Of a DNA stretch of 64,000 bases, positions 15,982 to 61,170 are shown one piece after another. The stretch's first letter is position 1, and each line of letters begins with the position of its first letter. Location of the stretch: the IMG/VR virus record IMGVR_UViG_3300050120_000152, positions 276,345 through 340,344 of that record; one strand, given 5' to 3'. The notes beneath the pieces were generated by a model. It made no database searches. It had not been told where the DNA came from and saw only the letters and a program-made list of their open reading frames with translations. The translations under genes were made by a program, and so were the position numbers.

Positions 15982-16317
15982 TTAATCGCTGGTCAAGTTA
16001 TATAGGGTACGCGCATAAGATGGTAATATAAGAACGCTACCTACAGTAAGCTCTTCATTGATATCTACAATATTATTATATTGTAATACCAGCCATTGAA
16101 AATCATCTCTACCATATAATTTATATGAAATTTTGTCGGCTCGGAATGCATAATCTGATGTTATAGTAAATTTTACATCGGTAATATTATCAGTAGGGAA
16201 CGTAGCTTTATCCCAATATCCTAAGAATTGCCCTGATATTTCTGTAGTACCGCCACGAACCATTCTACAGTTTTTATTATTTAAAGAACTTTTATTTTGA
16301 TAGAGTTTAAATGCCAT
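15982..16317 (-). CDS. Baseplate wedge subunit, gp53/LysM-like
   Basis: RADKISYKLYGRDDFQWLVLQYNNI..LTVGSVLILP. Confidence 0.8.
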   Translation of the reverse strand: MAFKLYQNKSSLNNKNCRMVRGGTTEISGQFLGYWDKATFPTDNITDVKFTITSDYAFRADKISYKLYGRDDFQWLVLQYNNIVDINEELTVGSVLILPSYARTLYNLTSD

Positions 16318-17181: not shown

Positions 17182-17294
17182 AGTTCTTTCCTCATTATAC
17201 TAATTCATATATTACCAATATTTATATCGTTTATAGATACAATTTTCTTGCATGTTTTAGAAATATAAATAGTTTAACAAATGAGATATACCAT

Positions 17295-39541: not shown

Positions 39542-40039
39542 ATGTTTTTTGGTATAATAGACAAATTAAAGCAACGTAGTGCAAAACGACAGGCTGATTA
39601 TGCTAAATTTATAGCTGATCGTGGGATAGCTAAACAGATATTGATAGTACGCAAAGATTTAAATATGCGTAAGGGTAAGATAGCAGCACAGTGTGCGCAT
39701 GCTAGTCTAGGTGCTATTTTAAAAAATTCTACTACTGAATATATCCATTCGGAATTAAGTTGTCATAGTTTGATGAAACGTATTATTACATATGATTCTG
39801 AAAGTTCTATGGCATCATGGTTAAATCATAGTTTCACTAAAATATGTGTCTATGTAAATTCTGAAGAAGAGTTGTTACAAATACAGTCTCAGGCTATATC
39901 AGCAGGAATATTAAATTGTCTTATAACAGATTCTGGTAAAACTGAATTTAATAATATACCAACTAACACAGTATTAGCATTAGGCCCAGCATGGTCAACA
40001 GATATTGATCCGATAACAAAACATTTACCATTATTGTAA
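39542..40039 (+). CDS. Peptidyl-tRNA hydrolase, Pth2 type
   Basis: VRKDLNMRKGKIAAQCAHAS..KI..DSGKTEF..TVLALGP..IDPITKHLPLL. Confidence 0.92.
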   Translation: MFFGIIDKLKQRSAKRQADYAKFIADRGIAKQILIVRKDLNMRKGKIAAQCAHASLGAILKNSTTEYIHSELSCHSLMKRIITYDSESSMASWLNHSFTKICVYVNSEEELLQIQSQAISAGILNCLITDSGKTEFNNIPTNTVLALGPAWSTDIDPITKHLPLL

Positions 40040-40128
40040 TATCAACTACTATAACACCACAGTCACAAGATAGAAATAATAAATTTAATATCACATTGAT
40101 AAATAATAACAATAAACAGAATCAAACT

Positions 40129-41685
40129 ATGAGCAATACTAATCTTCATAATTATCCATTTCGTGTAAATGATTCAGCGTTCGTAATAAATGAATCGGTT
40201 CTCATACGAGAAGGTATAGTAACGTCTATACCAGCTGGCGAAGTAACATCATATGGTGTTCTTATGAATGATACACAGTCAATAGAAAATTATACTTACG
40301 ATCAATTATTTGGTATAAGAAGTAATGCAGAAATATATATTCAGCAATTTTTAATAACTCCTACTCCAACAATTTCGGTATCCACTACCCCACATCCATC
40401 AAGAACACCAAAAGCATCGGTTACTCCTACTCCAACACCATCATCTTCATTTGTGATATATCCAGATGTTGCTGATAATATTGAATGGACTGCAACAAAT
40501 GGTTCTGTTATTGTACATGATGATAATTCTGTAAAATTTGTATCCAATTCGATTCAAGGTAATGTGGTATCTTTTAGTGCACCAATATCATTGATAGCAT
40601 CTACTAATTATAGGTTTAAATTAAGATTTAATGAAGGAACGTGTAGATATATCACTATAGAATTAGATTTGCAAGATGGAAGTCCTACTACTGTTTATAA
40701 ATTAGATTTGCAATTTAGTGGTACATTTCAATCCGATTTTTCTACATTAAATGATACAACAGGTGGTATTGTTACTATAAAAATGTATGCCGATTCTAAT
40801 TACAAATCTCCTGCATTAAATGCAACAAATTATAGTTTTTATACCTTTGATATAATACAAAAAAAGGATTCTTCACCTGTTCCAACTCCTACCCCATCAG
40901 CAATTGCCCAGACCCCATATACAATTCAATTTGATTCAACAGGAATAGTTGAGGTCGATACCGATTCTGGGATAACTATAGATTGGGGTGATGGTTCAGC
41001 GATAGAGATAGTTGATGGGGATGCATATGCGGAACATACGTATTCATCAGTTGGAACTTATATTGTTAAAGTATATGGTAATGCGACATCCATTGACGCC
41101 TATGAAATGGATGGAACTATCCCACCATCTAATTCAAAAATATTAAGTTTTGGAACCTATAATGTAGAAAATATTCAGGTGCCACATTCAGTGTATGAAG
41201 TTCCCGATCAAATACCTTCTACATTAACTAAGCTGAATTCTATGTTTGGTGGTACATTAGTGTTTAATCAAGACATTAGTTCATGGGATACTAGTAATGT
41301 AACAGATATGTCTTATATGTTTATTAATGCTATAGCATTCAATCAAGATATTAGTTCATGGAACACTAATAATGTAACGAATATGAATTCTATGTTTTAT
41401 AGTGCTAATATATTTAATCAAAATATTGGATCATGGGACACTAATAATGTAGCTGGTATGAGTCAAATGTTTTCTAGTGCTTCGGCATTTAATCAAGATA
41501 TTAGTTCATGGAATACGGGTAATGTAACTGATATGAGTTTTATGTTTTTAAATGCTTCAGCATTTAATCAAGATTTATCTCATTGGTGCGTCACATTGAT
41601 CCCATCAGTTCCTATGAACTTTGATTTGGGTGCTAACGCATGGACTGATCCACAACCTGTTTGGGGGACTTGTCCCGGTGCATAA
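40129..41685 (+). CDS. Surface/virion protein with PKD-like domain and DUF285 (BspA-like) repeats
   Basis: TPTP linkers, IDWGDG..HTYSSVGTY, and 25-aa repeats FNQDISSWNTxNVTxMxxMF. Confidence 0.8.
   Translation: MSNTNLHNYPFRVNDSAFVINESVLIREGIVTSIPAGEVTSYGVLMNDTQSIENYTYDQLFGIRSNAEIYIQQFLITPTPTISVSTTPHPSRTPKASVTPTPTPSSSFVIYPDVADNIEWTATNGSVIVHDDNSVKFVSNSIQGNVVSFSAPISLIASTNYRFKLRFNEGTCRYITIELDLQDGSPTTVYKLDLQFSGTFQSDFSTLNDTTGGIVTIKMYADSNYKSPALNATNYSFYTFDIIQKKDSSPVPTPTPSAIAQTPYTIQFDSTGIVEVDTDSGITIDWGDGSAIEIVDGDAYAEHTYSSVGTYIVKVYGNATSIDAYEMDGTIPPSNSKILSFGTYNVENIQVPHSVYEVPDQIPSTLTKLNSMFGGTLVFNQDISSWDTSNVTDMSYMFINAIAFNQDISSWNTNNVTNMNSMFYSANIFNQNIGSWDTNNVAGMSQMFSSASAFNQDISSWNTGNVTDMSFMFLNASAFNQDLSHWCVTLIPSVPMNFDLGANAWTDPQPVWGTCPGA
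41263..41586 (+). repeat. Four to five tandem 75-nt coding repeats (DUF285)
   Basis: Recurring TTTAATCAAGATATTAGTTCATGG..AATGTAAC unit. Confidence 0.8.
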
Positions 41686-41717
41686 AATATTATAAGTGAA
41701 CTTTTTTCTACAACTTG

Positions 41718-41767
41718 TATAAATAGATTTAAGAAGTGCTTGACAACATCGAAAAATGTGTTAAGCT
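41718..41767 (+). promoter_or_regulatory. Tandem late (TATAAATA) and sigma70 promoters of the tRNA array
   Basis: TATAAATA 41718-25. TTGACA(41740-45)-N16, then extended TGn-TAAGCT(41762-67). Confidence 0.7.
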
Positions 41768-41804
41768 ACATTCCTCAAACAACCAAACACAGAGATTTAC
41801 CGAA

Positions 41805-41894
41805 ATGAACACAATTAATAAGAAAAATTATGATCATAATATTGACTATAAATTTAGTCAAGGTGCTTCTTTGTCTGATAAAGGTGGCTGGTAA
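41805..41894 (+). CDS. Attenuator leader peptide MNTINKKNYDHNIDYKFSQGASLSDKGGW
   Basis: 29 codons after an AGAG RBS, lying between promoter and terminator. Contains the 5' antiterminator strand. Confidence 0.7.
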   Translation: MNTINKKNYDHNIDYKFSQGASLSDKGGW

Positions 41895-41931
41895 GTAAAA
41901 ATACCTCCAACAGAACCAGAAAAAGAAGCCC
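41865..41931 (+). promoter_or_regulatory. Antiterminator helix
   Basis: GCTTCTTTGTCTG (41865-77) is complementary to CAGAAAAAGAAGC (41917-29) at 12 of 13 positions and invades the terminator 5' arm. Confidence 0.7.
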
Positions 41932-41953
41932 GCGAAATGCGGGCTTTTTGTTT
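41926..41953 (+). terminator. Intrinsic terminator upstream of tRNA array (attenuator)
   Basis: AAGCCCGC-GAAAT-GCGGGCTT-TTTGTTT. Confidence 0.9.
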
Positions 41954-41986
41954 AAATGATCTTTAAAAACTTGAAAATATTTATAT

Positions 41987-42078
41987 GGGTAGGCACCGAA
42001 GTTGGAGAGTCGGAGGGCGCTGTAAACGCTCCGCATGAAAATAAGTCTGAGTAGGTTCGAATCCTATACTACCCACCA
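41987..42078 (+). tRNA. tRNA-Tyr(GTA)
   Basis: GGGCG-CTGTAAA-CGCTC arm, long variable arm, GGTTCGAATCC, encoded CCA. Confidence 0.9.
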
Positions 42079-42103
42079 TATTATAAACCTTAGAATACTT
42101 TGG

Positions 42104-42180
42104 GGTAGTTGTGATGGAATGGTAGACATATCGTGCTGTGAACACGATCCTCGTGGGTTCGATTCCCACCTTCTACCCCA
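42104..42180 (+). tRNA. tRNA-His(GTG)
   Basis: TCGTG-CTGTGAA-CACGA arm, G-1/C73, CCA. Two T-T mismatches in the acceptor stem. Confidence 0.85.
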
Positions 42181-42197
42181 AAGTGTTTTAAAAATAT

Positions 42198-42274
42198 ACC
42201 GCGTGGGTCTGCTTGGTGAAGATTTTTGCCTGTCACGCAAAAGATGAGGGGTTCGAATCCCCTACGCGGTGCCA
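42198..42274 (+). tRNA. tRNA-Asp(GTC)
   Basis: ACCGCGT/ACGCGGT acceptor, TTTGC-CTGTCAC-GCAAA, G73, CCA. Confidence 0.9.
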
Positions 42275-42280
42275 AATATT

Positions 42281-42356
42281 GGGAGTATGACAGTGATGGT
42301 TCATGTGCTAGACTGAAAATCTAGAAATTCTGGTTCGATCCCAGATGCTCCCACCA
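42281..42356 (+). tRNA. tRNA-Phe(GAA)
   Basis: CTAGA-CTGAAAA-TCTAG arm, TTCGATC loop, ACCA. Confidence 0.9.
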
Positions 42357-42361
42357 AACAT

Positions 42362-42436
42362 GGGTTACAAGCATTAATAGTGATGCAGGAGACTCTTAAT
42401 CTTCAGAATAGGGAGCATTACCCTAGTAACCCACCA
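42362..42436 (+). tRNA. tRNA-Lys(CTT), non-canonical D/T loops
   Basis: GGGTTAC/GTAACCC, GGAGA-CTCTTAA-TCTTC, T arm TAGGG-AGCATTA-CCCTA, ACCA. Confidence 0.8.
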
Positions 42437-42441
42437 AATAT

Positions 42442-42517
42442 GGGCATCCTACACTATGGAGTAGGCAATTTTGAAACTCAAGATTGGTATTAGGTTCGAA
42501 TCCTATTATGTCCACCA
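42442..42517 (+). ncRNA. tRNA-like gene with closed, elongated anticodon arm
   Basis: Acceptor, D-like and TTCGAAT arms plus ACCA. Anticodon arm is CAATTTTGA-AAC-TCAAGATTG. Confidence 0.65.
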
Positions 42518-42523
42518 AAATAT

Positions 42524-42599
42524 GGGTCATAAACATTAATACGTGATGTAGGAGTCCTTTAAACTTCAAAACTCGGGGCGGTACCGAGATGACCCACCA
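42524..42599 (+). tRNA. tRNA-Lys(TTT), non-canonical (C33, GGCGGTA T-loop)
   Basis: GGGTCAT/ATGACCC, GGAGT-CCTTTAA-ACTTC, CTCGG-GGCGGTA-CCGAG, ACCA. Confidence 0.75.
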
Positions 42600-42606
42600 A
42601 ACATAT

Positions 42607-42684
42607 GGAACGTAGCGCGAAGTGGTAAGCGACTCGACTTTTAATCGAACAGACTACTGGGTTCAAGCCCCAGACGTTCCACCA
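42607..42684 (+). tRNA. tRNA-Lys(TTT)
   Basis: GGAACGT/ACGTTCC, TCGA-CTTTTAA-TCGA, TTCAAGC loop, ACCA. Confidence 0.85.
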
Positions 42685-42690
42685 AAATAT

Positions 42691-42816
42691 GGAGCAGAGG
42701 CCAAACGGTTAGGCAATCGGCTGTGGGAAAAGATGTAAAGGCATCCAAAGCTAGTTCAAGTCTAGTATTCCAAAGGTAACCGATGATATAGGGTTCGACT
42801 CCCTACTGCTCCGCCA
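42691..42816 (+). tRNA. tRNA-Asn(GTT) interrupted by a 52-nt anticodon-loop insertion (42725-42776)
   Basis: GGAGCAG/CTGCTCC acceptor, G73, CCA. ATCGG-CTGT[insert]TAA-CCGAT reconstitutes a typical Asn arm. Confidence 0.75.
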
Positions 42817-42835
42817 TTTTATATGATTTATTTGG

Positions 42836-43108
42836 ATGAAAAATAACATGAATAACGATTTTGAAGTAAAAATCATATCTGATAAGAAAATTAAAGTTTC
42901 TATTGAAGAGATTTTATCTATAAGAAAACGATGTAAAGAGATAAATTCTGTAAAACTTAATGATATTGAATTTACTTTTGATGGAAAAATTATTAATCCT
43001 TCATTAGAAGATATAGAGCATTGGTACTTTACCGGATTAAATAATATTGATTTTGTTAGATGTATATTAGAAGGGGAATATATTCCTTTACAAAATATAG
43101 ATGATTGA
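42836..43108 (+). CDS. Hypothetical protein
   Basis: 90-aa ORF between tRNA genes. Confidence 0.55.
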   Translation: MKNNMNNDFEVKIISDKKIKVSIEEILSIRKRCKEINSVKLNDIEFTFDGKIINPSLEDIEHWYFTGLNNIDFVRCILEGEYIPLQNIDD

Positions 43109-43186
43109 AATATAGTACGTGACCCGAGCATAGTAGCACACTGGTATGATAATGATAAATAGTTATTATCAGAGAGTAAATCTACT

Positions 43187-43798
43187 ATGTCACAGACTAA
43201 TAATTATAGAAATGTTAAAAATTATAGATTAAGAATAAAAGATATTGTTTTATTTTCTATGGGAAATAAATGTCAAATATGTAAGTATGATAAATGTAAA
43301 GCAGCATTAGAAATTCATCATGTTGACCCCACGACAAAAGAATATTCTATTAATGAAATTAAATCTTGGAGTAAGATGTGTGCAGAATTACCAAAATGTA
43401 TCTTATTATGTGCTAATTGTCACCGAGAAGTTCATCATAATGATTTAAAAATTCCTACCGAATATAATAGATTTGATCAAGAAAAAGCAAATGGTTTAAA
43501 AATTGAACAAGCAGAATTAGGTAGAATTATAAGCAATAAAGCGGTGATTAAATATAACAAACAGTTAGCCATCCAGAGAAAAATAGATTATCAAGAAAAA
43601 TTAAAACTTCTTAAAGAAGTTAGAACTAATATAATATTAAATTCTAACATAGATTTTACTAAATTTGGTTGGGGTGAGCAATTGGGAAAATGTTTTGGTA
43701 TAAGTAGACAAAAAGCGTCAGCATGGTTTAAAAAGCATTTACCAGATATGTATTATTCTAATAATATTAAGAAATTTCCACGAAAAACGGTTGTGTAG
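43187..43798 (+). CDS. HNH homing endonuclease
   Basis: CQICKY..LEIHHVDP..CILLCANCHREVH. Stop codon lies inside tRNA-Ile. Confidence 0.85.
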   Translation: MSQTNNYRNVKNYRLRIKDIVLFSMGNKCQICKYDKCKAALEIHHVDPTTKEYSINEIKSWSKMCAELPKCILLCANCHREVHHNDLKIPTEYNRFDQEKANGLKIEQAELGRIISNKAVIKYNKQLAIQRKIDYQEKLKLLKEVRTNIILNSNIDFTKFGWGEQLGKCFGISRQKASAWFKKHLPDMYYSNNIKKFPRKTVV

Positions 43799-43863
43799 CT
43801 CAGTGGTAGAGCGCAGTCCTGATAAGACTGTGGTCGAAGGTTCGATTCCTTCTACAACCACCA
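43789..43863 (+). tRNA. tRNA-Ile(GAT)
   Basis: Canonical cloverleaf, CAGTC-CTGATAA-GACTG, ACCA. Confidence 0.95.
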
Positions 43864-44022
43864 TTTTAAAATAAATATTTTTGATAATTTTATGTCAACA
43901 GAATCAGAAGAGCGTCAGCAAATTATAAATTTGCTAAAAGAATGTATCCAACACATGGATATTCTAAATCAACATCTTGCTAAACTTTATCCAATGGATG
44001 ATGGCGAGAATTAATAATTTAT

Positions 44023-44093
44023 GGGATGTTAGCTAAGTGGTAAAGCATGGGCAAATCGCCCCGAGGTCAATGGTTCGAATCCATTACATCCCC
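44023..44093 (+). ncRNA. tRNA-like gene lacking a valid anticodon loop
   Basis: GGGATGT/ACATCCC, TAGCTAAGTGGTAAAGC, GGTTCGAATCC. Anticodon arm is GGGC-AAATC-GCCC. No full CCA. Confidence 0.7.
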
Positions 44094-44110
44094 ATTACTT
44101 GAGAAATAAT

Positions 44111-44368
44111 ATGTCCTTATCGAAAGAAATAAAAGAGTCCTTATGGGACTTTTATGGTTGTGACAGTTTCAGTCGTTTACATGATTGTTTGATTGAATTT
44201 TACGATGATGTAACCGAAGATCATGTATATAAATTATTTTTAATGTTACCAGATTTTATTATTGGATTAGGCATTAGTTGGTCATTTAACGATACTGAAG
44301 TTGGTGATGCTGTTTATTCATTCATAGAAACTAATACCGAAATGGTAGATACATTATTTAAGGATTAA
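44111..44368 (+). CDS. Hypothetical protein
   Basis: ORF with GAG RBS. Confidence 0.55.
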   Translation: MSLSKEIKESLWDFYGCDSFSRLHDCLIEFYDDVTEDHVYKLFLMLPDFIIGLGISWSFNDTEVGDAVYSFIETNTEMVDTLFKD

Positions 44369-44403
44369 CATGTATTGGATTCTTCAAGATAACCTATTAC
44401 CGT

Positions 44404-44480
44404 GGAGCAATAGCTTAACTGGACAAAGTTTCTGATTCCTAATTGGAAAGATGTGAGTTCGAATCTCACTTGCCCCACCA
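44404..44480 (+). tRNA. tRNA-Arg(CCT)
   Basis: TCTGA-TTCCTAA-TTGGA, GTGAG-TTCGAAT-CTCAC, ACCA. Confidence 0.85.
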
Positions 44481-44530
44481 CTTGACATATCAACGATTCT
44501 GTATTAATCTCTTGTAAAGAGGATTAGATT

Positions 44531-44758
44531 ATGAATGAAGTTAGCGTAGGTATTACTGGCCCAGCAGGTTCAGGTAAGTCAACAATACTATCAATTATTC
44601 AAAAAGCATTATTGGATGCTGGATTTGCTAATGTTGTTATAAGTGATTCGGGTAATTCTATTGACTTGAATACTAGAATTACCACATTACAAAGCCATGG
44701 AACTAAGATTTGGTTAGGCACACATCAAACTATACGAACTCTTCATGGTGCTAATTAA
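44531..44758 (+). CDS. Small P-loop-containing protein
   Basis: GPAGSGKST. TTGACA promoter and AGAGG RBS upstream. Confidence 0.6.
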   Translation: MNEVSVGITGPAGSGKSTILSIIQKALLDAGFANVVISDSGNSIDLNTRITTLQSHGTKIWLGTHQTIRTLHGAN

Positions 44759-44996
44759 ACACATACTTGACAATATCATCACATTGTAGTAATGTATTGT
44801 TATTATGAATGAAGAAATCAGAAAGAAAGAAGCTGAAATTAAAAACCAACAACGATGTAATTTGAAATACAGTAAATCACGTTGGTATAATTCTGGAATA
44901 ACTACTCTTGAGCGGTTACAAAAAGAATTGGAAGAACTTAAAAAGTTATTTTTGAATGATAGTGAAGCTAAATAATTCAACAAGGGTTATTTAGCT

Positions 44997-45245
44997 ATGA
45001 TCAAAAAATTGTGGGGGTTCATAGTTGTTCATAACTATGTGAAGTGTGGACTCAGATATGGTATTGACCAAGAAAGTTCTTGGCAAGTTGGTGATTCCGA
45101 GAACAGATATTATATAAAAACTTTCGCATTCTGGTCTAAATTATATCATAAAATAGGATATAGATGTATATCTGATGATATTTGGGCATCATGTACTTAT
45201 GATATTTCCAGATATAAACCATTTTTCAAAATTAAACGTTTTTAA
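44997..45245 (+). CDS. Hypothetical protein
   Basis: 82-aa ORF. Confidence 0.45.
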   Translation: MIKKLWGFIVVHNYVKCGLRYGIDQESSWQVGDSENRYYIKTFAFWSKLYHKIGYRCISDDIWASCTYDISRYKPFFKIKRF

Positions 45246-45378
45246 TGGGACGTTAGTTCACGAGTCTAACATCTTAGTCCATATGAGTCCATATTGACCT
45301 AGAAATAATATTGTAATAAATTTGTGTTGGCATGCGGAAATATATAAATACCCGTATAATCTATCCAAATCCCCTACA

Positions 45379-46434
45379 ATGAAAAAAACCCTATTTATAC
45401 TTAAGAAGCGTAGTAATAATTATCAATCAGATTTGCCATCTATGACCGGCACACTATCATCTGGATTAATTAATTCAGTTAAATTCGTAGATAATATGTT
45501 GAATGACCATGGTATTGAATCCCACTTCGTAGAAGTAGATGACAATAACGATATCGACCGCGAAGTCACCAAGTACAAGCCAGATGTAGTCATCATCGAA
45601 GCTATTTGGGTTGTGCCTAATAAATTTGAGGTATTGCGTAAGCGTCACCCTAACGTTCAATGGATTATTAGAATTCACTCAGAAATACCATTTATCTCTG
45701 GTGAAGGTAATGCATTAGAATGGCTGTTTGGATATGTTGCATACGATAATGTTCTGATCGCAGCTAATACTGAAAGAATGGAACATGATTTGAAGCATAT
45801 GTTAGCAGCTAGTCATGGAGATGCACTTATTGAAAATAAAGTGATATATTTACCAAATTACTATAAAGAGAAGATCATACATCAGGATGCCGATAGAAAA
45901 ATTGCTTATAAAGATTTCTTGAATGTCGGTTGTTTTGGTGCTATACGACCATTAAAAAATCAATTGATTCAAGCAATGGCGGCAATTGAATATGCTAGAG
46001 AGAATAGTAGACGCTTGAGATTCCATATTAACGGCTCTCGTATAGAACAAGGCGGTAATGTATTAAAGAATATTAGAAATTTATTTGCTAATCTTGATAA
46101 TAAATTTTATGAGTTAGTGGAACATCCATGGTTAAACCATGAAGATTTCTTACAGTTAGTTAGTCATATGGATGTTGGTTTACAAGTTTCATTTTCTGAA
46201 ACGTTTAATATTGTAACGGCAGACTTTGTAAGTAGAGATGTGCCGGTTGTCGTGTCATCTGAGATAACATGGTTATCATCAATATCACATGCTAATACAA
46301 CGTCTATACCGTCGATTGCCAAAGCAATTAAATATTCTTTAGATAATAGAAAAGCTGTGACAGTATCGAATAAAGCTAAATTGAGAGAATTCAATCATGA
46401 TAGCGAACGTAGTTGGATTAAATATTTAGGTTAA
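45379..46434 (+). CDS. GT-B (GT4-like) glycosyltransferase
   Basis: FGAIRPLKNQ..DVGLQVSFSETFNIVTADFVSRDVPVVVS. TATAAATA at 45343. Confidence 0.75.
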   Translation: MKKTLFILKKRSNNYQSDLPSMTGTLSSGLINSVKFVDNMLNDHGIESHFVEVDDNNDIDREVTKYKPDVVIIEAIWVVPNKFEVLRKRHPNVQWIIRIHSEIPFISGEGNALEWLFGYVAYDNVLIAANTERMEHDLKHMLAASHGDALIENKVIYLPNYYKEKIIHQDADRKIAYKDFLNVGCFGAIRPLKNQLIQAMAAIEYARENSRRLRFHINGSRIEQGGNVLKNIRNLFANLDNKFYELVEHPWLNHEDFLQLVSHMDVGLQVSFSETFNIVTADFVSRDVPVVVSSEITWLSSISHANTTSIPSIAKAIKYSLDNRKAVTVSNKAKLREFNHDSERSWIKYLG

Positions 46435-46441
46435 GAAATAC

Positions 46442-46516
46442 GCACCCTTAGTTCAGTGGTAGAATGCTTCTCTGACTTAGAAGAGGTCGAAGGTTCGATT
46501 CCTTCATGGTGTACCA
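46442..46516 (+). tRNA. tRNA-Val(GAC)
   Basis: CTTCT-CTGACTT-AGAAG arm (pyrimidine at 37), TTCGATT loop, ACCA. Confidence 0.85.
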
Positions 46517-46534
46517 AATTAGTTAAATAAATAA

Positions 46535-46804
46535 ATGATAAACAACAGTTATAAAAAGCTTGACTTTGATGGTGAAATTGATTTAACATATCTAAATGGT
46601 AAGGTTAAAGGATTTTCCGATGAAAAGGGTAATAGTAAATTTTATACTAGAGCCGTAGGATTCGTTGATGATCTTGAACATGCAAAATTATTGATATCAG
46701 AATTAGTTGATGATAAAACAATTATTTGTTATGCTTACCTGACAAATGGATCAGATAATATGGAAGAAAAATCATTTTTGACGATTCGATCTAATATTAA
46801 GTAA
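46535..46804 (+). CDS. Hypothetical protein
   Basis: 89-aa ORF. Confidence 0.45.
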   Translation: MINNSYKKLDFDGEIDLTYLNGKVKGFSDEKGNSKFYTRAVGFVDDLEHAKLLISELVDDKTIICYAYLTNGSDNMEEKSFLTIRSNIK

Positions 46805-46852
46805 TTGATTTTCTTATTATAATAAATATAATTATAATAGGATTCGTTTCAC

Positions 46853-47314
46853 ATGGATAGTGAAGTAAAAAATATACCGGATGATTATAGCAACCATCCA
46901 TTAGTACAAAATGCTACTGATGTTCATTATAATGAAATGTCAAAAGTGGAAAAAATATGTGCGTGGGTTTGTGACGAAATTGGATCACCCTTTGCATTAT
47001 TTGCTATTATTGTTATACAGGTATTATGGGTTGTATTAGGACAAACAAGTAATCTTGATCCATATCCATATGTGTTTCTATTAACAATTTCTAATGTTAT
47101 TCAATTGATTTTAATATTTATTTTAGCGGTAGGCCAGCGTCAATCGGTACAGCGATCAGAAATCCGATCACAAACTGATCATGATTCTATATCAAGAATA
47201 ATGCATCATCAAGATTTACAGGAAAAAATACTATTGCAAATTTTACAACATCATGATATAAATAGTGACGAAGTAAAAAATGTATTAGCTGCACTAAATA
47301 TTTCATCGGATTGA
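46853..47314 (+). CDS. DUF1003-like membrane protein
   Basis: GSPFALF..W..LDPYPYVFLL..ILAVGQ with two hydrophobic helices. Confidence 0.75.
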   Translation: MDSEVKNIPDDYSNHPLVQNATDVHYNEMSKVEKICAWVCDEIGSPFALFAIIVIQVLWVVLGQTSNLDPYPYVFLLTISNVIQLILIFILAVGQRQSVQRSEIRSQTDHDSISRIMHHQDLQEKILLQILQHHDINSDEVKNVLAALNISSD

Positions 47315-47356
47315 ACTGACGATAAATACCTACATAACTAGTAGGTTTATTGTTCA

Positions 47357-47998
47357 ATGAGATATAATAATGAAGAAGAGAAATCGAAAGCAATAAAGTT
47401 AAGAACTGAAAATTTTTTGTCTTTATCACAAATCAGTAAAGAGGTAGGATTGTCTGTCGCAACCTTATCCGTTCTATTAAGAGCTTATCCTTTAACTAAA
47501 CAGCGAATAAATGAATTAAAATTGCCTGCGCAAAAATTAGCTGCTAAAGCCAATAAAGATAAGTCAATACTGAGAAAAAATAAATTTAAAAATGAAGGTA
47601 TGGTTTTAGTAAATGAAGACCCTCTTTTTAGAGATTTATGTTTTCTGTATTGGGGTGAAGGTACAAAATTTAAATCCAATACAAGATTTTCTATATGTAA
47701 TTGTGATCCATACATGGTAAAATATATTTACAAAGTTATTTTTCATTTGGGATATATAAATAGTATGGTAACTACTGCCTATTGTTATACTGATTCAAAT
47801 AATACTGAGATAATTAATTATTGGAATGATTTTATTCAATCCCCAATAAATATTTATAAAGTTAAAAATTCTATTGCTAGTAAATTATTAAATACACATA
47901 AGCAACCTTATGGAACTTTACGTATTGATGTTAACTCTGTAGAATTGTATAATAAAGTTTTAGGTGGTATAGAAGCAATAAAGATTTTGGCCGGTTAG
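47357..47998 (+). CDS. Putative HTH plus LAGLIDADG-like endonuclease
   Basis: N-terminal HTH, LYWGEGTK..NCDP..YGTLRI. Late promoter hairpin upstream. Stop lies inside tRNA-Val. Confidence 0.6.
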   Translation: MRYNNEEEKSKAIKLRTENFLSLSQISKEVGLSVATLSVLLRAYPLTKQRINELKLPAQKLAAKANKDKSILRKNKFKNEGMVLVNEDPLFRDLCFLYWGEGTKFKSNTRFSICNCDPYMVKYIYKVIFHLGYINSMVTTAYCYTDSNNTEIINYWNDFIQSPINIYKVKNSIASKLLNTHKQPYGTLRIDVNSVELYNKVLGGIEAIKILAG

Positions 47999-48063
47999 CT
48001 CAGCGGTAGAGCAGGACGTTTACACCGTTCAGGTCGCGGGTTCGACTCCCTCACCGGCTACCA
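47989..48063 (+). tRNA. tRNA-Val(TAC)
   Basis: GGACG-TTTACAC-CGTTC, TTCGACT loop, ACCA. Confidence 0.9.
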
Positions 48064-48065
48064 AG

Positions 48066-48273
48066 TTTTACAGCGTCCACTGTAAAAGGTTCATATCTTT
48101 CCTTAAAGATAGGCTGACCATAATCAGACGCGAAGTATGGGGGTGCCACTGCTACCACAATTGATAAGTGTAGTGGGTCAGTCAGAAGATCACATTCTGA
48201 ATTTCCTCATCAATGATATAAATTTGATGCTCTAATTAGCTGCTGGTGTTGCAATTAGAGTAGGATACCAGCA
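48066..48273 (+). ncRNA. Unassigned structured RNA candidate
   Basis: Several helices and loop-loop complementarities between tRNA genes, with no credible ORF. Confidence 0.5.
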
Positions 48274-48280
48274 AAAATTT

Positions 48281-48354
48281 TGGGAATAAATCAAATAGAG
48301 AGATATCTGGCTTTGAACCAGAGTAAGTGGGAGCATTACCCTCATTCCCATCCA
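48281..48354 (+). tRNA. tRNA-Gln(TTG), non-canonical AGCATTA T-loop
   Basis: TGGGAAT/ATTCCCA (T1-A72), TCTGG-CTTTGAA-CCAGA, CCA. Confidence 0.8.
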
Positions 48355-48359
48355 ATTAT

Positions 48360-48434
48360 GCCCGTGTAGCACAGTGATAGTGCAGTTCTTTGGTAAAGAG
48401 AAGGTCAAAGGTTTAATTCCTTTCTCGGGCACCA
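48360..48434 (+). tRNA. tRNA-Thr(GGT)
   Basis: GCCCGTG/CTCGGGC, loop TTGGTAA, T-loop TTTAATT with D-loop GA, ACCA. Confidence 0.8.
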
Positions 48435-48494
48435 TTTTAAGCTTGACCCCGTTATGCTTGTAGAGATAGCCTTGGATCATCAAGCCAATTTTAT

Positions 48495-48572
48495 TGAGAA
48501 GTCGGCAAGTGGATTAAGCCATCGCTCTCTGAAAGCGATATTTCGTGAGTTCGAATCTCACCTTCTCAGCCA
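48495..48572 (+). tRNA. tRNA-Gln(CTG)
   Basis: TGAGAAG/CTTCTCA, TCGCT-CTCTGAA-AGCGA, GCCA. Confidence 0.92.
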
Positions 48573-48577
48573 TTTTA

Positions 48578-48597
48578 AGCCCCTTTCGGGGCTTTTT
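48578..48597 (+). terminator. Intrinsic terminator closing the tRNA array
   Basis: AAGCCCC-TTTC-GGGGCTTTTT. Confidence 0.85.
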
Positions 48598-48636
48598 CAT
48601 TTCTGAACATAGAATAAATCTTAATTTACTAATCAA

Positions 48637-48664
48637 TTGACATTAATCAAAATCCTGTTAACAT
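48637..48664 (+). promoter_or_regulatory. sigma70-type promoter of the ter-like operon
   Basis: TTGACA-N16 with TGn-TAACAT, the same layout as the tRNA-array promoter. Confidence 0.6.
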
Positions 48665-48697
48665 ATTCACATCTTACAACACAACCAAGGATGTTAC

Positions 48698-49780
48698 ATG
48701 TCAACATTTACCGAGTTTTATAAAAAGCCGACCATTGCTCTTATCGTAGCAATCGTGTTAGGTGGTTTAATTGGATATCACGATTCTGGTGTCATTGGTG
48801 CAGCTATCACGTCTGCTATGACAGTTATAATCCTTTCCATTTTAGAAATATCCATGTCGTTTGATAACGCAGTTTTAAATGCAAAAATTCTCAAGCCCAT
48901 GTCAGATGCCGCTCGTAATTGGTTCATGTTATGGGGTATCCTGATCGCAGTAGTTGGAATGCGCCTGCTAGTCCCTGTATTGATCGTATCAGCGGTTGGA
49001 AGTATGGCACCATGGACAGCATTCATGATTGCACTCACTAATCCATCACAGTATTCAACATTATTAACTTCATCAGCTGATTATGTATCAGCCTTTGGTG
49101 GATCATTCTTGATGATGGTTGCATTGAACTTCTTTCTTGGTGACGAAAAAGAAACCAATTGGTTACACTTTTTAGAAGTTCCTTTAGCTAAATTGGCTAA
49201 ACTTGAAGTAGTTATTACGTTACTAGTTGTAATTTTGGCGGCATTGGGTGTTAATCATGACCGTCAATTTACGTTCGTTATGGCTGGTTCTTTGGGTATT
49301 ATGCTAAACATTGCCATCGGTGTTCTAAAAGAGAAACTTGAAGAACATGCACCAGAAGCTGCTCAAGGCGTTGCAGTTACAATTAAAAGCGCCATCGCAA
49401 GCCTAATTTATCTTGAAGTTCTTGATGCAAGCATGTCATTTGATGGTGTGATCGGTGCATTTGCAATCACTACAGAAATTTTCTTGGTAATGCTTGGTCT
49501 TGGTGTAGGTGCAATGTTCGTTCGTGGTATGACTATTAACTTAGTCAAAAATGATACCATGGCTGAATATCGCTATCTTGAACATGGTGCATTGTGGTCA
49601 ATCGCGGTATTAGCGGCCATCATGTTCATCAAAGTTAATCATCATGTGCCAGAACTCTTTACAGGATTGATAAGTGCTGCTATAATTGCAATTGCAGTAG
49701 TCCATTCTCATATTTTGAACAAACGTGAAGCATCATCCACCGCAACAACTCTAGTCGATTATAAGCCCGAAGTACTTTAA
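48698..49780 (+). CDS. DUF475/TerC-like integral membrane protein
   Basis: LEISMSFDNAVLNA..GMRL and YLEVLDASMSFDGVIGAFAIT..YLEHGA. Confidence 0.88.
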   Translation: MSTFTEFYKKPTIALIVAIVLGGLIGYHDSGVIGAAITSAMTVIILSILEISMSFDNAVLNAKILKPMSDAARNWFMLWGILIAVVGMRLLVPVLIVSAVGSMAPWTAFMIALTNPSQYSTLLTSSADYVSAFGGSFLMMVALNFFLGDEKETNWLHFLEVPLAKLAKLEVVITLLVVILAALGVNHDRQFTFVMAGSLGIMLNIAIGVLKEKLEEHAPEAAQGVAVTIKSAIASLIYLEVLDASMSFDGVIGAFAITTEIFLVMLGLGVGAMFVRGMTINLVKNDTMAEYRYLEHGALWSIAVLAAIMFIKVNHHVPELFTGLISAAIIAIAVVHSHILNKREASSTATTLVDYKPEVL

Positions 49781-49788
49781 GGAAAAAT

Positions 49789-50880
49789 ATGCCAATCCCA
49801 ATTAATATTTTCGGCAACCATGCCATAGTTACGCCAGACGGTTCAACAGTTCCCATTACTGATGCTACTCTTGCCGTTCAATTTACAGCATTAACACCGT
49901 CAGTACAAAACCAACAGATCGCCACCATTACAGAAGATTATATTATGAATATAGGATCAGCATCCTCTAAAGGATTGACTGATCTTACATCCAAGATTTT
50001 ATCATCTGCCAGTGCTACCAGTGGCGGTGAAATGGGGGCTAAATTAGATGAATTAATCGATACTACTAAAGGCATGTCAGTTGATAATTTTCAAGCTAAT
50101 CCCTTAACAAAATTCTTTAACAAAGCATTACGTATGAAAGATCATGCTATGGAAACTTTCCAGACAGCTAATGATCGCGTCAATATTCTTGTTGCGCAGC
50201 TTGAAAAAGAGCGTAATGGGCAAGATAGTGATAGAAAATCTATTGATGCATTGGCACAGCAAAATTACGAATATTGCAAAGCTATTATAGTAGAAATTGA
50301 TGATGCTAAGGAAAAGTATGCCACACTTGGCAATGCTATTGGTAAATTTGGTACCAGCGATCAATCACCAGATTTTGAACAGGCAAAAATCTTAGATGAT
50401 TTACAAACTAAGTATGATATGCTTGAAAAGAAAATTGTAGATTTAGAAGCCAATAAACTTCTTTCTATGAACATGGAACCGAAATTAAAGTTAATGAAGC
50501 AAGGTTCTATCAGTCTTATTGGTACATTCGATAATATCGTAGGTAAAATTGTACCATTATATATGCAACAATTTGCAGCTTATTTGATTATGCAACGTCA
50601 AACTCAAACTGCTGCTGTAGGCGACAAGGCAATTGCTATGTTCAACCAGCAAATTATTGCTGGTAGTAATAAGGCAGCAGCAAACGCAGAAGCTATTGCA
50701 CAATTAAGTCAAAAGCAAATTATTGATGTAGACACTTTGAAGAAAGATCATGAGAATGTGGTTAATTCTCTCGATAAGGTAAAGCAAATTGCACTCGATG
50801 CAAGAACCAACCGCAAGGCCATCATGCAAGAAATCCAAACGATGGAACAAGATACAATTAACGCATTTTCTAAACATTAA
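49789..50880 (+). CDS. Toxic anion resistance protein, TelA-like
   Basis: Coiled-coil protein with IIDVDTLKK C-terminal motif, in ter context. Confidence 0.75.
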   Translation: MPIPINIFGNHAIVTPDGSTVPITDATLAVQFTALTPSVQNQQIATITEDYIMNIGSASSKGLTDLTSKILSSASATSGGEMGAKLDELIDTTKGMSVDNFQANPLTKFFNKALRMKDHAMETFQTANDRVNILVAQLEKERNGQDSDRKSIDALAQQNYEYCKAIIVEIDDAKEKYATLGNAIGKFGTSDQSPDFEQAKILDDLQTKYDMLEKKIVDLEANKLLSMNMEPKLKLMKQGSISLIGTFDNIVGKIVPLYMQQFAAYLIMQRQTQTAAVGDKAIAMFNQQIIAGSNKAAANAEAIAQLSQKQIIDVDTLKKDHENVVNSLDKVKQIALDARTNRKAIMQEIQTMEQDTINAFSKH

Positions 50881-61132: not shown

Positions 61133-61170
61133 CAAAAAATATTTGTTTGATAATATAAATAGAATCATAC

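Follow-up and report, generated by a model that had tools for sequence, protein, structure and literature searches.

Region 41718-41953 of an uncultured jumbo phage sequence appears to be the regulatory leader of the phage's first tRNA operon, in which a 29-codon mini-gene built almost only from the codons read by the tRNAs just downstream is coupled to a terminator/antiterminator switch. We consider it more likely than not that this element works as a ribosome-mediated transcription attenuator that makes phage tRNAs when the cell decodes those codons slowly, although all evidence is computational and translation of the mini-gene, its coupling to transcription and the response to tRNA supply are inferred. 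The element lies in a 64,000-nucleotide stretch of IMG/VR record IMGVR_UViG_3300050120_000152, hereafter the window, and coordinates below refer to its plus strand unless another sequence is named. A first-pass annotation of the sequence had proposed a leader-peptide attenuator whose regulatory codons match the tRNAs it controls, and this central reading is supported by our comparisons, since the ORF, the antiterminator pairing and the codon/tRNA match are conserved in homologous loci, which was the test that the annotation had named.

We first examined the individual parts of the element, and all stated coordinates were confirmed. A T4-type late-promoter-like motif, TATAAATAG, lies at 41718-41726 and occurs 8 times in the window against 2.9 expected. 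It is followed by a sigma-70-type promoter at 41740-41767, consisting of TTGACA (41740-41745), a 16-nt spacer and a TG-extended TAAGCT (41762-41767), with a predicted transcript start at about 41774. The leader ORF runs from ATG at 41805 to TAA at 41892-41894 and encodes MNTINKKNYDHNIDYKFSQGASLSDKGGW; it was also called as a gene, a singleton, by IMG. A 14-nt DNA palindrome within the ORF, ATTATGATCATAAT, is unlikely to be an operator because it is not kept in a homologous sequence (L002, see below). Downstream of the ORF lies an intrinsic terminator at 41923-41953 with the core GCCCGC/GCGGGC (41928-33/41939-44), extended to an 11-bp stem (41923-33/41939-49) with a GAAAU loop and followed by a T-tract, and an energy of -18.0 kcal/mol. 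The terminator is located 33 nt before tRNA-Tyr, and no promoter-like site lies between them (41954-41986).

The tRNA list of the first-pass annotation is largely right, but two of its members are non-canonical or ambiguous. ARAGORN with default settings calls only tRNA-His (GTG, 42105-42180), tRNA-Asp (GTC, 42198-42274), tRNA-Phe (GAA, 42281-42356) and a canonical tRNA-Lys (TTT, 42607-42684) in this block. Rfam and relaxed ARAGORN searches add tRNA-Tyr (GTA, 41987-42078; Rfam tRNA 30.7 bits) as the first gene of the operon, tRNA-Lys (CTT, 42362-42436) with a non-canonical T-loop, and tRNA-Asn (GTT, 42691-42816) with a 52-nt insertion in the anticodon loop, which folds as a cloverleaf. The segment 42524-42600 folds as a Lys-UUU cloverleaf with C33 and an odd T-loop, while 42442-42517 is tRNA-like but has no normal anticodon loop. 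The seventh isotype, tRNA-Ile (GAT, 43789-43863; 73 bits), lies 1 kb further downstream after two ORFs.

We next asked whether the codon content of the leader exceeds what would be expected from its AT-richness. Of codons 2-17 (41808-41855), 15 of 16 belong to the isotypes of the downstream tRNAs, namely Asn, Ile, Lys (AAG and AAA), Tyr, Asp, His and Phe, with one Thr as the exception. Composition-matched, stop-free shuffles reach this count with P=0.0027, and only 3 of 799 AT-matched stop-free 16-codon windows in the 64 kb reach 15; the enrichment exceeds composition with P=0.0027 to 1e-4. However, the enrichment over the whole ORF is marginal in the window (P=0.06), and the signal lies in the N-terminal run, which was delimited after seeing the data.

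The codons following this run are part of the predicted RNA switch. Segment 2 (41862-41877, GG-U-GCUUCUUU-G-UCUG, codons 20-25) can pair with segment 3 (41917-41931, CAGA-A-AAAGAAGC-CC), which overlaps the 5' arm of the terminator: 41865-77 pairs with 41917-29 as 8 bp, one G/A mismatch and 4 bp, and GG 41862-63 additionally pairs with CC 41930-31. The duplex energy is -17.8 kcal/mol, and the whole antiterminator hairpin is -20.1 against -18.0 kcal/mol for the terminator. A perfect 8-mer complement of AAAGAAGC appears in only about 4 of 10,000 shuffled leaders, whereas the interior of the antiterminator hairpin is not significantly more structured than shuffles in any single sequence (z = -0.8 to -1.5).

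To ascertain whether the element is conserved, we compared it to related sequences. Searches of cultured phages found nothing homologous, as megablast and blastn hit only tRNAs and generic terminators and tblastn with the peptide hit nothing meaningful, and a single metagenome scan returned only sequences that we had already identified. Among uncultured phage sequences, however, the whole unit is conserved in six further distinct ones, designated L002, L090 (identical to L091 and L094), L092, L106, L108 and L109. Together with the window, these seven distinct homologues share the promoter, an ORF with the same start position (ATG in six, GTG in one), invariant GCTTCTTT and AAAGAAGC cores and the terminator, followed 15-45 nt later by the first tRNA. 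TTGACA and TGTTAAG of the sigma-70-type promoter are conserved, with L002 scoring 10/12 with TG, and the late-promoter-like motif is conserved at the same place in 5 of the 6 other family members in which it can be read; L092 has ACTAAATAG and L109 lacks it. The upstream neighbour differs, being a DUF285 gene, a 146-aa ORF, a 503-aa ORF or PTH2; the element therefore belongs to the tRNA block. The tRNA blocks likewise match the leader, since L002 has 12 tRNAs of exactly the seven isotypes and a second terminator (16223-16250) that closes the block, L106 has 14 tRNAs, 13 of them assignable and all of the same seven isotypes, and L090 and L092 carry the same set. The seven family members are related, and their agreement does not represent seven independent observations.

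Within the family, the leaders of the homologues score 16/16, 16/17, 16/16, 15/16, 15/16 and 15/16 for the seven-isotype set, and variable positions interchange chemically unlike residues (I/K/F, N/F, K/I/N, K/H) but stay in the set. A 3-nt indel preserves the reading frame, the C-terminal tails of the four sequences examined in detail are 18, 27, 21 and 27 nt, and the other frames carry 1-10 stops. This evidence of translation is only indirect; the substitution pattern by codon position (7, 9 and 13 minimum changes) is only weakly coding-like, L002 starts with GTG, and the ribosome-binding site is weak, with only GAGA at -10 to -14 where the phage's genes mostly show AGGA/GAGG.

The comparison also supports the predicted RNA structures. 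A hairpin inside the ORF (H1, 41842-41861, UUGACUA/UAGUCAA) is part of the RNAalifold consensus and shows two compensatory double changes, U-A to A-U in L002 and U-A to C-G in L092, both of which change the amino acid, and the terminator shows a compensatory C-G to U-A change in L090. The GCTTCTTT core of segment 2 is invariant in all seven homologues, including its synonymous sites. Since the 8-nt cores of both antiterminator strands never vary, the key helix has no covariation of its own, and only its flanks give modest support: they vary among homologues but keep pairing, UCUG:CAGA against UCUA:UAGA is a compensatory change, and the shuffled-flank test gives a combined P of about 0.01 from non-independent sequences. 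In transcripts truncated before the 3' arm of the terminator, segment 2 pairs with segment 3 in all four sequences tested, and its pairing probability is 0.97 at window lengths 41931-41942. The antiterminator is as stable as the terminator or more so (-17.4 to -25.9 against -14.1 to -18.9 kcal/mol), but that it acts as an antiterminator is inferred.

We further modeled the influence of a ribosome on the choice between both structures. With a ribosome footprint at codon 5 or 15 of the window, the terminator state is favored by only 1-3 kcal/mol, while at the stop codon the gap is 11 kcal/mol in the window and 3-9 in the relatives, which is a shift in the expected direction. Nevertheless, at equilibrium the terminator wins in the window, L002 and L092 in every ribosome position modeled, and in L090 in most, and the switch would have to be kinetic. 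The first-pass annotation had also claimed that the absence of translation leads to read-through, which is not supported as written. A purine-rich 5'-UTR stretch next to the weak ribosome-binding site (segment 1, 41789-41801, ACAGAGA..UACC) pairs with 41862-41874 in the full-length MFE and in terminator-constrained folds of the window, and analogous pairing occurs in L002, L090 and L092. Without a ribosome, this candidate anti-antiterminator, which is inferred only, pairs with the antiterminator strand in the window, L002 and L092 and the terminator forms, so that the predicted default is termination.

A terminator directly in front of the tRNA genes requires read-through, and we analyzed how common this arrangement is. 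Only 11 of 492 tRNAs in the loci analyzed have a terminator within 90 nt upstream, and six of these 11 are the leader cases described here. In L092 the terminator stem ends 21 nt before the first tRNA, and in two sequence-unrelated phage loci, L023 and L025, the distances are 10 and 14 nt, which leaves no room for a promoter. Of other loci with a terminator before a tRNA, L006 and L008 are ordinary gene-end terminators, with a promoter after the terminator in L006. L020/L021 has a 31-aa ORF, a terminator and an amber-suppressor tRNA, but no in-frame TAG, so that a codon match cannot be tested.

Three sequence-unrelated cases show the same logic with other isotype sets. L023 has a 43-codon ORF in which 23 of the first 25 residues are in {I,L,M,N,R,T,V}, the isotypes of its 17-tRNA block. 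This match holds at codon level (AGA/Arg-TCT, CTA/Leu-TAG, TTA/Leu-TAA), and an exact 11-nt copy of the terminator 3' arm lies inside the ORF. L025 has the leader MTNEKSESFKMYESYSIESKQRDSFV before Ile, Phe, Glu and Ser tRNAs, and its last codons and stop codon pair with the upper 5' arm of the terminator. Searches for relatives of the L023 and L025 leaders found only chance hits or the sequence itself, and both remain singletons. Finally, the cultured phages XacN1 and Xoo-sp13 carry a conserved mini-ORF, MNK[PL]YYKRYY.., before Lys and Tyr tRNAs, although the XacN1 case lacks a canonical terminator; within XacN1 1-50000, the only terminators just upstream of tRNAs are an intra-array hairpin before tRNA-Cys and a block-end terminator. 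Permuting isotype sets among 71 tRNA blocks gives P=0.003 for the mean of the six top scores.

Taken together, we propose that transcripts start at the sigma-70-type promoter, and late in infection at the TATAAATAG promoter, and carry an ORF whose codons 2-17 sample the codons read by the tRNAs encoded just downstream. If the ribosome runs quickly through these codons, it covers segment 2 and the stop-codon region while RNA polymerase transcribes the terminator, the terminator forms and the tRNAs are not made. If the ribosome waits for any of the respective aminoacyl-tRNAs, segment 2 stays free and pairs with segment 3 as soon as the latter emerges, occupying nearly all of the terminator's 5' arm, and polymerase reads through into tRNA-Tyr and the rest of the operon. 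Without any ribosome, segment 1 probably pairs with segment 2 and termination is the default. The result would be a negative feedback in which phage tRNA output is set by how well the infected cell decodes exactly those codons. The suggestion of the first-pass annotation that this could be an inducible anti-defence circuit has no specific support, as the analogues sense sets such as {I,L,M,N,R,T,V} and {E,F,I,S}, which we do not know as a nuclease-target set. The design rather looks like general sensing of decoding capacity, which would also respond to nuclease damage.

Other explanations have to be considered. It is possible, but in our view unlikely, that the conserved 190-nt transcript is an independent small gene or small RNA with its own promoter and terminator, that the tRNAs are made by constitutive leaky read-through, and that the codon/tRNA match is a by-product of AT-richness, RNA-structure constraints (H1, segment 2) and shared ancestry. 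The high nucleotide-level conservation, including synonymous sites, and the amino acid-changing covariation of H1 are typical of a functional RNA, and the weak ribosome-binding site and the lack of direct covariation in the antiterminator cores are in line with this reading. Moreover, attenuator-derived RNAs can act in trans (PMC6614838), so a separate RNA function is possible even alongside attenuation. On the other hand, the codon enrichment survives composition-matched controls, variable residues stay in the set, start codon and frame are kept through indels, and three sequence-unrelated leaders track different tRNA sets with a significant permutation test. Nor does this reading explain why a segment inside the ORF mimics the terminator 3' arm, both here and as an exact 11-mer in L023.

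It is more doubtful that the element is a regulated terminator which responds not to ribosome speed but to a phage or host antitermination protein, to direct binding of uncharged tRNA to the leader RNA, or to a change in polymerase properties between early and late infection. The conserved tandem early-type and late-type promoters, the conserved terminator that must be read through, the alternative structures and the lack of direct evidence for translation would all be compatible with this possibility. Yet, no T-box match was found at E<=1 in 41000-50000 and no other riboswitch or leader family scores above threshold in Rfam; Trp_leader reaches 24.2 bits on the plus and 26.7 bits on the minus strand against a cut-off of 41, and thus reflects only the hairpin. 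The isotype-matched codon runs in this family and in L023, L025 and XacN1 would also remain unexplained. Very unlikely is the view that the hairpin is simply the terminator of the upstream DUF285/PKD gene (40096-41685) and that the ORF and pairing are chance features of an AT-rich spacer. The terminator does lie 240 nt after the stop codon of this gene, and the window contains 181 ATG ORFs of 25-40 aa, but promoter motifs lie between that gene and the ORF, both the 8-mer complement (about 4e-4) and the codon enrichment (P of about 0.003) are improbable by chance, and the reading is contradicted by synteny, since the element is conserved with the tRNA block while the upstream gene differs in each relative examined.

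About as likely as not, in our estimation, is the broader hypothesis that jumbo phages and megaphages widely head their tRNA operons with such sampler leader peptides, mini-ORFs with roughly one or two codons for each tRNA in the operon, so that each operon is switched on when, and only when, the infected cell decodes those codons poorly, possibly due to codon-usage mismatch, host shut-off, starvation or cleavage of tRNAs by host anticodon nucleases. Codon-usage compensation, replacement of host tRNAs degraded during infection and escape from tRNA-cleaving defences have been proposed to explain why large phages carry tens of tRNA genes, and a built-in sensor would show that phages measure decoding capacity codon by codon and make tRNAs on demand. 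It would also provide a compact multi-input part (seven isotypes in 16 codons) for synthetic biology and a rule for delimiting tRNA operons in phage genomes.

When compared to characterized systems, the element shares with cellular tRNA operons, and presumably with the T4 tRNA cluster, the organization as a multi-tRNA transcription unit processed from a precursor, but E. coli pheV has a plain promoter about 35 nt upstream and no leader ORF or terminator. We are not aware of a tRNA operon shown to be controlled by a leader peptide, and our literature searches found none. In drug-inducible attenuators of resistance genes (erm, cat, vmlR, msrD; PMC8274638, PMC9226507, PMC10314930), ribosome stalling on a short leader ORF likewise remodels downstream RNA structure, but the stall is caused by a drug together with a specific nascent peptide and not by the supply of cognate tRNA, and many of these systems act on translation rather than on termination. 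The pheST (pheM) and other aminoacyl-tRNA-synthetase leader attenuators and T-box riboswitches also control translation-apparatus genes according to tRNA charging by terminator/antiterminator choice; however, pheM controls a synthetase through Phe codons only, and T-boxes, of which no features are present here, bind uncharged tRNA directly without an ORF. The element further resembles the leader-peptide attenuators of amino-acid biosynthesis operons such as trp, his, pheA, leu, thr, ilvGMEDA and ilvBN (PMC1183508, PMC3082878), with a short ORF in the 5' leader, regulatory codons cognate to the operon's product, an intrinsic terminator before the first regulated gene, an antiterminator whose 5' strand lies inside or next to the ORF, a possible anti-antiterminator and a thermodynamically favored terminator that would make the decision kinetic. 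Multivalent leaders exist among these as well (ilv: Leu/Val/Ile; thr: Thr/Ile). In contrast to them, the element described here is viral and matches no Rfam leader model, its leader samples seven isotypes in 16 codons, about one or two of each, instead of runs of one or two amino acids, and the regulated genes are tRNAs and not enzymes, so that the molecule sensed, aminoacyl-tRNA, is nearly the direct product of the operon.

The 64-kb window has a G+C content of about 33% and forms the end of the 340-kb uncultured viral contig IMGVR_UViG_3300050120_000152. It encodes a T4-type portal protein whose closest cultured relatives are the Xanthomonas jumbo phages XacN1 and Xoo-sp13, at 51% identity, of which XacN1 carries 56 tRNA genes in its terminal repeat (PMC5852040). 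No tRNA gene lies in the window before position 41987, and from there on tRNA genes are interspersed with ORFs. A PTH2-type peptidyl-tRNA hydrolase gene (39542-40039) is located just upstream of the tRNA region. We found 218 relatives of it in IMG/VR viral contigs, and many of the 80 loci retained sit next to tRNA arrays. A second strong terminator on the + strand (48577-48594, AAGCCCC-TTTC-GGGGCTT followed by T's) lies immediately after tRNA-Gln (48495-48572) and closes the tRNA-rich stretch 41987-48572, just before a TerC/DUF475 membrane-protein gene (48698-49780).

All elements that the first-pass annotation had described for the leader region, i.e. tandem promoters, a 29-codon leader ORF, a strong terminator and a pairing between the ORF and the terminator 5′ arm, are present. 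The motif TATAAATAG, the T4 late-promoter motif plus G, lies at 41718-41726. It is over-represented in the window with 8 occurrences against 2.9 expected (other copies lie at 17264, 22160, 47257, 47755 and 61154-61162), and the copy at 61154-61162 ends 8 nt before tRNA-Thr (61171), so that some tRNAs may have their own late promoters. TTGACA, a 16-nt spacer and a TG-extended TAAGCT follow at 41740-41767. The ORF runs from 41805 to 41894, and the terminator consists of an 11-bp stem (41923-33/41939-49) and a T-tract with an energy of -18.0 kcal/mol. Positions 41865-77 pair with 41917-29 at 12 of 13 positions, and GG at 41862-63 additionally pairs with CC at 41930-31. Fifteen of codons 2-17 encode N, I, K, Y, D, H or F.

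The list of downstream tRNAs, given by the first-pass annotation as Tyr, His, Asp, Phe, Lys-CTT, two Lys-TTT, Asn and Ile, needs qualification. Default ARAGORN calls only His, Asp, Phe and Lys-TTT, while Rfam and relaxed ARAGORN add Tyr, Lys-CTT and an Asn-GTT (42691-42816) with a 52-nt insertion in the anticodon loop. The latter is found by ARAGORN only with the intron option and relaxed thresholds and folds as a cloverleaf carrying an extra two-hairpin insert, which is too short for a group I intron. Three tRNA-like genes in the Lys part of the block (42362-42600) are unusual: Lys-CUU (42362-42436) has the T-loop AGCAUUA instead of the canonical T-loop, a cloverleaf at 42442-42517 lacks a normal anticodon loop and has an anticodon arm of 9 bp with a 3-nt loop, and 42524-42600 folds as a Lys-UUU cloverleaf with C33 and the non-canonical T-loop GGCGGUA. 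These genes, which are followed by a canonical Lys-UUU at 42607, may be decoys or nuclease-resistant variants. Ile-GAT is located 1 kb further downstream, and its start (43789) is overlapped by the last codons of a 203-aa ORF (43187-43798) with Cys/His motifs (CxxC..HH..CxxCH) and no Pfam hit, which is possibly HNH-like. L109, one of the homologous loci described below, has a Pfam HNH gene inserted between tRNA-Tyr and tRNA-Asp. Homing-type endonucleases may be invading the tRNA arrays.

We next asked whether the codon content of the leader exceeds what is expected by chance. The seven amino acids make up 40% of the residues in the long ORFs of the phage and 42% in its short ORFs. The 48-nt stretch of codons 2-17 is 85% A+T, and shuffles with the same base composition and no stop codon reach 15/16 with P=0.0027. 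Only 3 of 799 AT-matched, stop-free 16-codon windows in the whole 64 kb reach 15. A perfect complement of AAAGAAGC occurs in about 4 of 10,000 shuffled leaders. Over the whole ORF, however, the enrichment is only marginal (P=0.06); the signal is a sharp N-terminal run whose limits were chosen after seeing the data.

Peptide-pattern scans and a profile search of 1.84 billion protein representatives identified six further distinct versions of the element, designated L002, L090 (identical in three samples), L092, L106, L108 and L109. All versions share the TTGACA promoter, with TGTTAAG in six of the seven, an ORF starting at the same position (ATG in six, GTG in one), the invariant segment GCTTCTTT inside the ORF, the invariant AAAGAAGC at the foot of the terminator, the terminator itself and a first tRNA 15-45 nt later, while the TATAAATAG motif is present in five of the six other members. 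The gene upstream differs among the four versions examined: it is a DUF285/PKD gene in the window (40096-41685), a 146-aa ORF in L002, a 503-aa ORF in L090 and PTH2 in L092. The gene in the window encodes a 529-aa protein with a Thr/Pro-rich linker, a PKD domain and DUF285 repeats of the 'Mycoplasma protein' type, and the gene in the same position in L002 has a very long Thr/Pro/Ser/Val repeat region; the 529-aa protein is probably a surface or fibre protein. The differing neighbors show that the element travels with the tRNA block and is not the terminator of a neighboring gene.

The tRNA blocks are made of the same seven isotypes. L002 has 12 tRNAs of exactly this set, closed by a second terminator at 16223-16250, L106 has 14 tRNAs, 13 of them assignable and all of this set, and L090 and L092 carry the same set. 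In the leaders, 15-16 of 16-17 codons are in the set. Variable positions swap chemically unlike residues (I/K/F, N/F, K/I/N, K/H, Y/F, I/N, F/N) but stay in the set, and this restriction disappears after codon 18. This pattern fits selection on codon class and not on peptide chemistry.

We then analyzed the RNA structure of the leader. The RNAalifold consensus contains a hairpin inside the ORF (H1, 41842-41861) with two compensatory double substitutions, both of which change the encoded amino acid, as well as the terminator with one compensatory change. In transcripts cut before the 3′ arm of the terminator, the minimum-energy fold of all four sequences tested closes a long hairpin, which holds the stop codon, by pairing GCUUCUUU with AAAGAAGC. 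In the window, this pairing has a probability of 0.97 for RNA ending at 41931-41942, and at equilibrium the terminator replaces it from 41944 on. Standing alone, the antiterminator hairpin is as stable as the terminator or more so (-17.4 to -25.9 against -14.1 to -18.9 kcal/mol), and in five of the seven sequences it occupies the 5′ arm of the terminator up to its last two bases. The two 8-nt cores never vary, so the central helix has no covariation of its own. The non-coding flank of segment 3, the 3′ strand of the antiterminator, differs among homologs (CAGAA, CAGA, UAGA, UUAGA, GGAC) yet keeps pairing with the coding flank (UCUG, UCUA, GUCU), and UCUG:CAGA against UCUA:UAGA is a compensatory change. 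Shuffling of the flank gives a combined P of about 0.01, although the sequences are related.

To ascertain how a ribosome might influence these structures, we modeled different ribosome positions on the leader. Without a ribosome, the terminator state is favored by 5-8 kcal/mol in the window, L002 and L092 because a purine-rich 5′-UTR segment next to the start codon (41789-41801) pairs with segment 2, the 5′ strand of the antiterminator. Hence, the predicted state without translation is termination and not the read-through that the first-pass annotation had proposed. With a footprint at codon 5 or 15 of the window the gap falls to 1-3 kcal/mol, whereas with the ribosome at the stop codon it is 11 kcal/mol in the window and 3-9 kcal/mol in the relatives. 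The direction of these changes is as the attenuator model predicts. Because the terminator wins at equilibrium in nearly every case modeled, the choice would have to be kinetic.

The terminator and tRNA-Tyr are separated by 33 nt with no promoter-like site. The terminator stem ends 21 nt before the first tRNA in L092, and 10 nt and 14 nt before it in L023 and L025, respectively, two analogous loci described below, T-tract included. The first tRNAs can therefore only be made by read-through. Such an arrangement is rare: of 492 tRNAs in all loci analyzed, 11 have a terminator-like hairpin within 90 nt upstream, of which six are leader cases and two more are ordinary gene-end terminators. A similar layout was observed in L020 (1747-1998) and likewise in L021, where a 31-aa ORF with a GGAG ribosome-binding site is followed by a terminator and, 16 nt later, by an amber-suppressor-type tRNA (anticodon CTA).

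The first-pass annotation had proposed to test whether leader content tracks the tRNA set of each array, and we searched for independent analogs. L023, from a 508-kb contig, has a TTGACA-17-TATATT promoter and a 43-codon ORF, MKTLTVNMNLNNTMTTVVNITLCNIRPESGLVPICLKEKDIMR, which is followed by a strong terminator, and tRNA-Leu begins one or two nucleotides after the T-tract. Of the first 25 residues, 23 are in {I,L,M,N,R,T,V}, the isotypes of the 17-tRNA block, and the match holds at codon level (AGA with Arg-TCT, CTA with Leu-TAG and TTA with Leu-TAA). Codons 27-31 contain an exact 11-nt copy of the 3′ arm of the terminator, which makes a perfect antiterminator. This leader ORF (2492-2623) is already called as a 'hypothetical protein' on a 711-kb contig in the protein collection; such leaders are hidden in existing annotations as tiny hypothetical genes. 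L025, from a 228-kb contig, has TATAAATA, an AGGA ribosome-binding site and the ORF MTNEKSESFKMYESYSIESKQRDSFV, followed by a 16-bp terminator and by tRNA-Ile a few nucleotides after the T-tract. Its block is Ile, Phe, Glu, Ser, with Tyr further on, and 13 of 25 residues are in the set (P=0.002), or 15 of 25 with Tyr. The last codons and the stop codon pair with the upper 5′ arm and loop of the terminator.

The cultured phages XacN1 and Xoo-sp13 carry a conserved mini-ORF, MNKPYYKRYYAKA in XacN1 and MNKLYYKRYYKKLP in Xoo-sp13, directly before Lys and Tyr tRNAs in a 53% G+C genome (P=0.0013). The hairpins that follow are conserved, but there is no T-tract terminator. In XacN1 (AP018399.1, 30283-30397 and 30490-30540), there is an unannotated tRNA-like gene with a long insertion, and the first tRNA-Lys (CTT) of the block is truncated by a 44-nt deletion relative to Xoo-sp13. 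We further performed a systematic scan of 71 tRNA blocks, in which every ATG or GTG mini-ORF in the 260 nt upstream was scored for enrichment in the isotypes of the block. The mean of the six top scores is 2.98, against 1.83 when isotype sets are permuted among blocks (P=0.003), and the top scores come from unrelated lineages.

The best-supported reading of these data, in which we have moderate confidence, is a ribosome-mediated transcription attenuator that places a phage tRNA operon under feedback control by the supply of the very aminoacyl-tRNAs it provides. It rests on the anatomy of the element, its conservation as a unit attached to the tRNA block, the codon/tRNA correspondence beyond composition, the mutually exclusive structures and the recurrence of the same design with other isotype sets. 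Translation of the ORF, its coupling to transcription and the response to tRNA supply are, however, inferred; the ribosome-binding site is weak and the substitution pattern is only mildly coding-like. Alternatively, the region might represent a separate small RNA or small protein combined with a leaky terminator, or a terminator regulated by some other factor, while a chance ORF next to a gene-end terminator is contradicted by synteny. The anti-defense function raised in the first-pass annotation is possible as a consequence, because any depletion of these tRNAs would open the switch, but it has no specific support, since the analogs sense quite different isotype sets.

When compared to known systems, the element matches no Rfam leader or T-box model. 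Our literature searches found no report of attenuation of tRNA genes by a leader peptide, in phages or in cells, and E. coli pheV, which we examined as a possible precedent, has no such leader. The proposed mechanism is that of the classical leader-peptide attenuators, and the element fulfills every sequence-level criterion for that class that we tested. What is new is the target, namely tRNA genes, the multi-isotype sampler leader and the viral setting.
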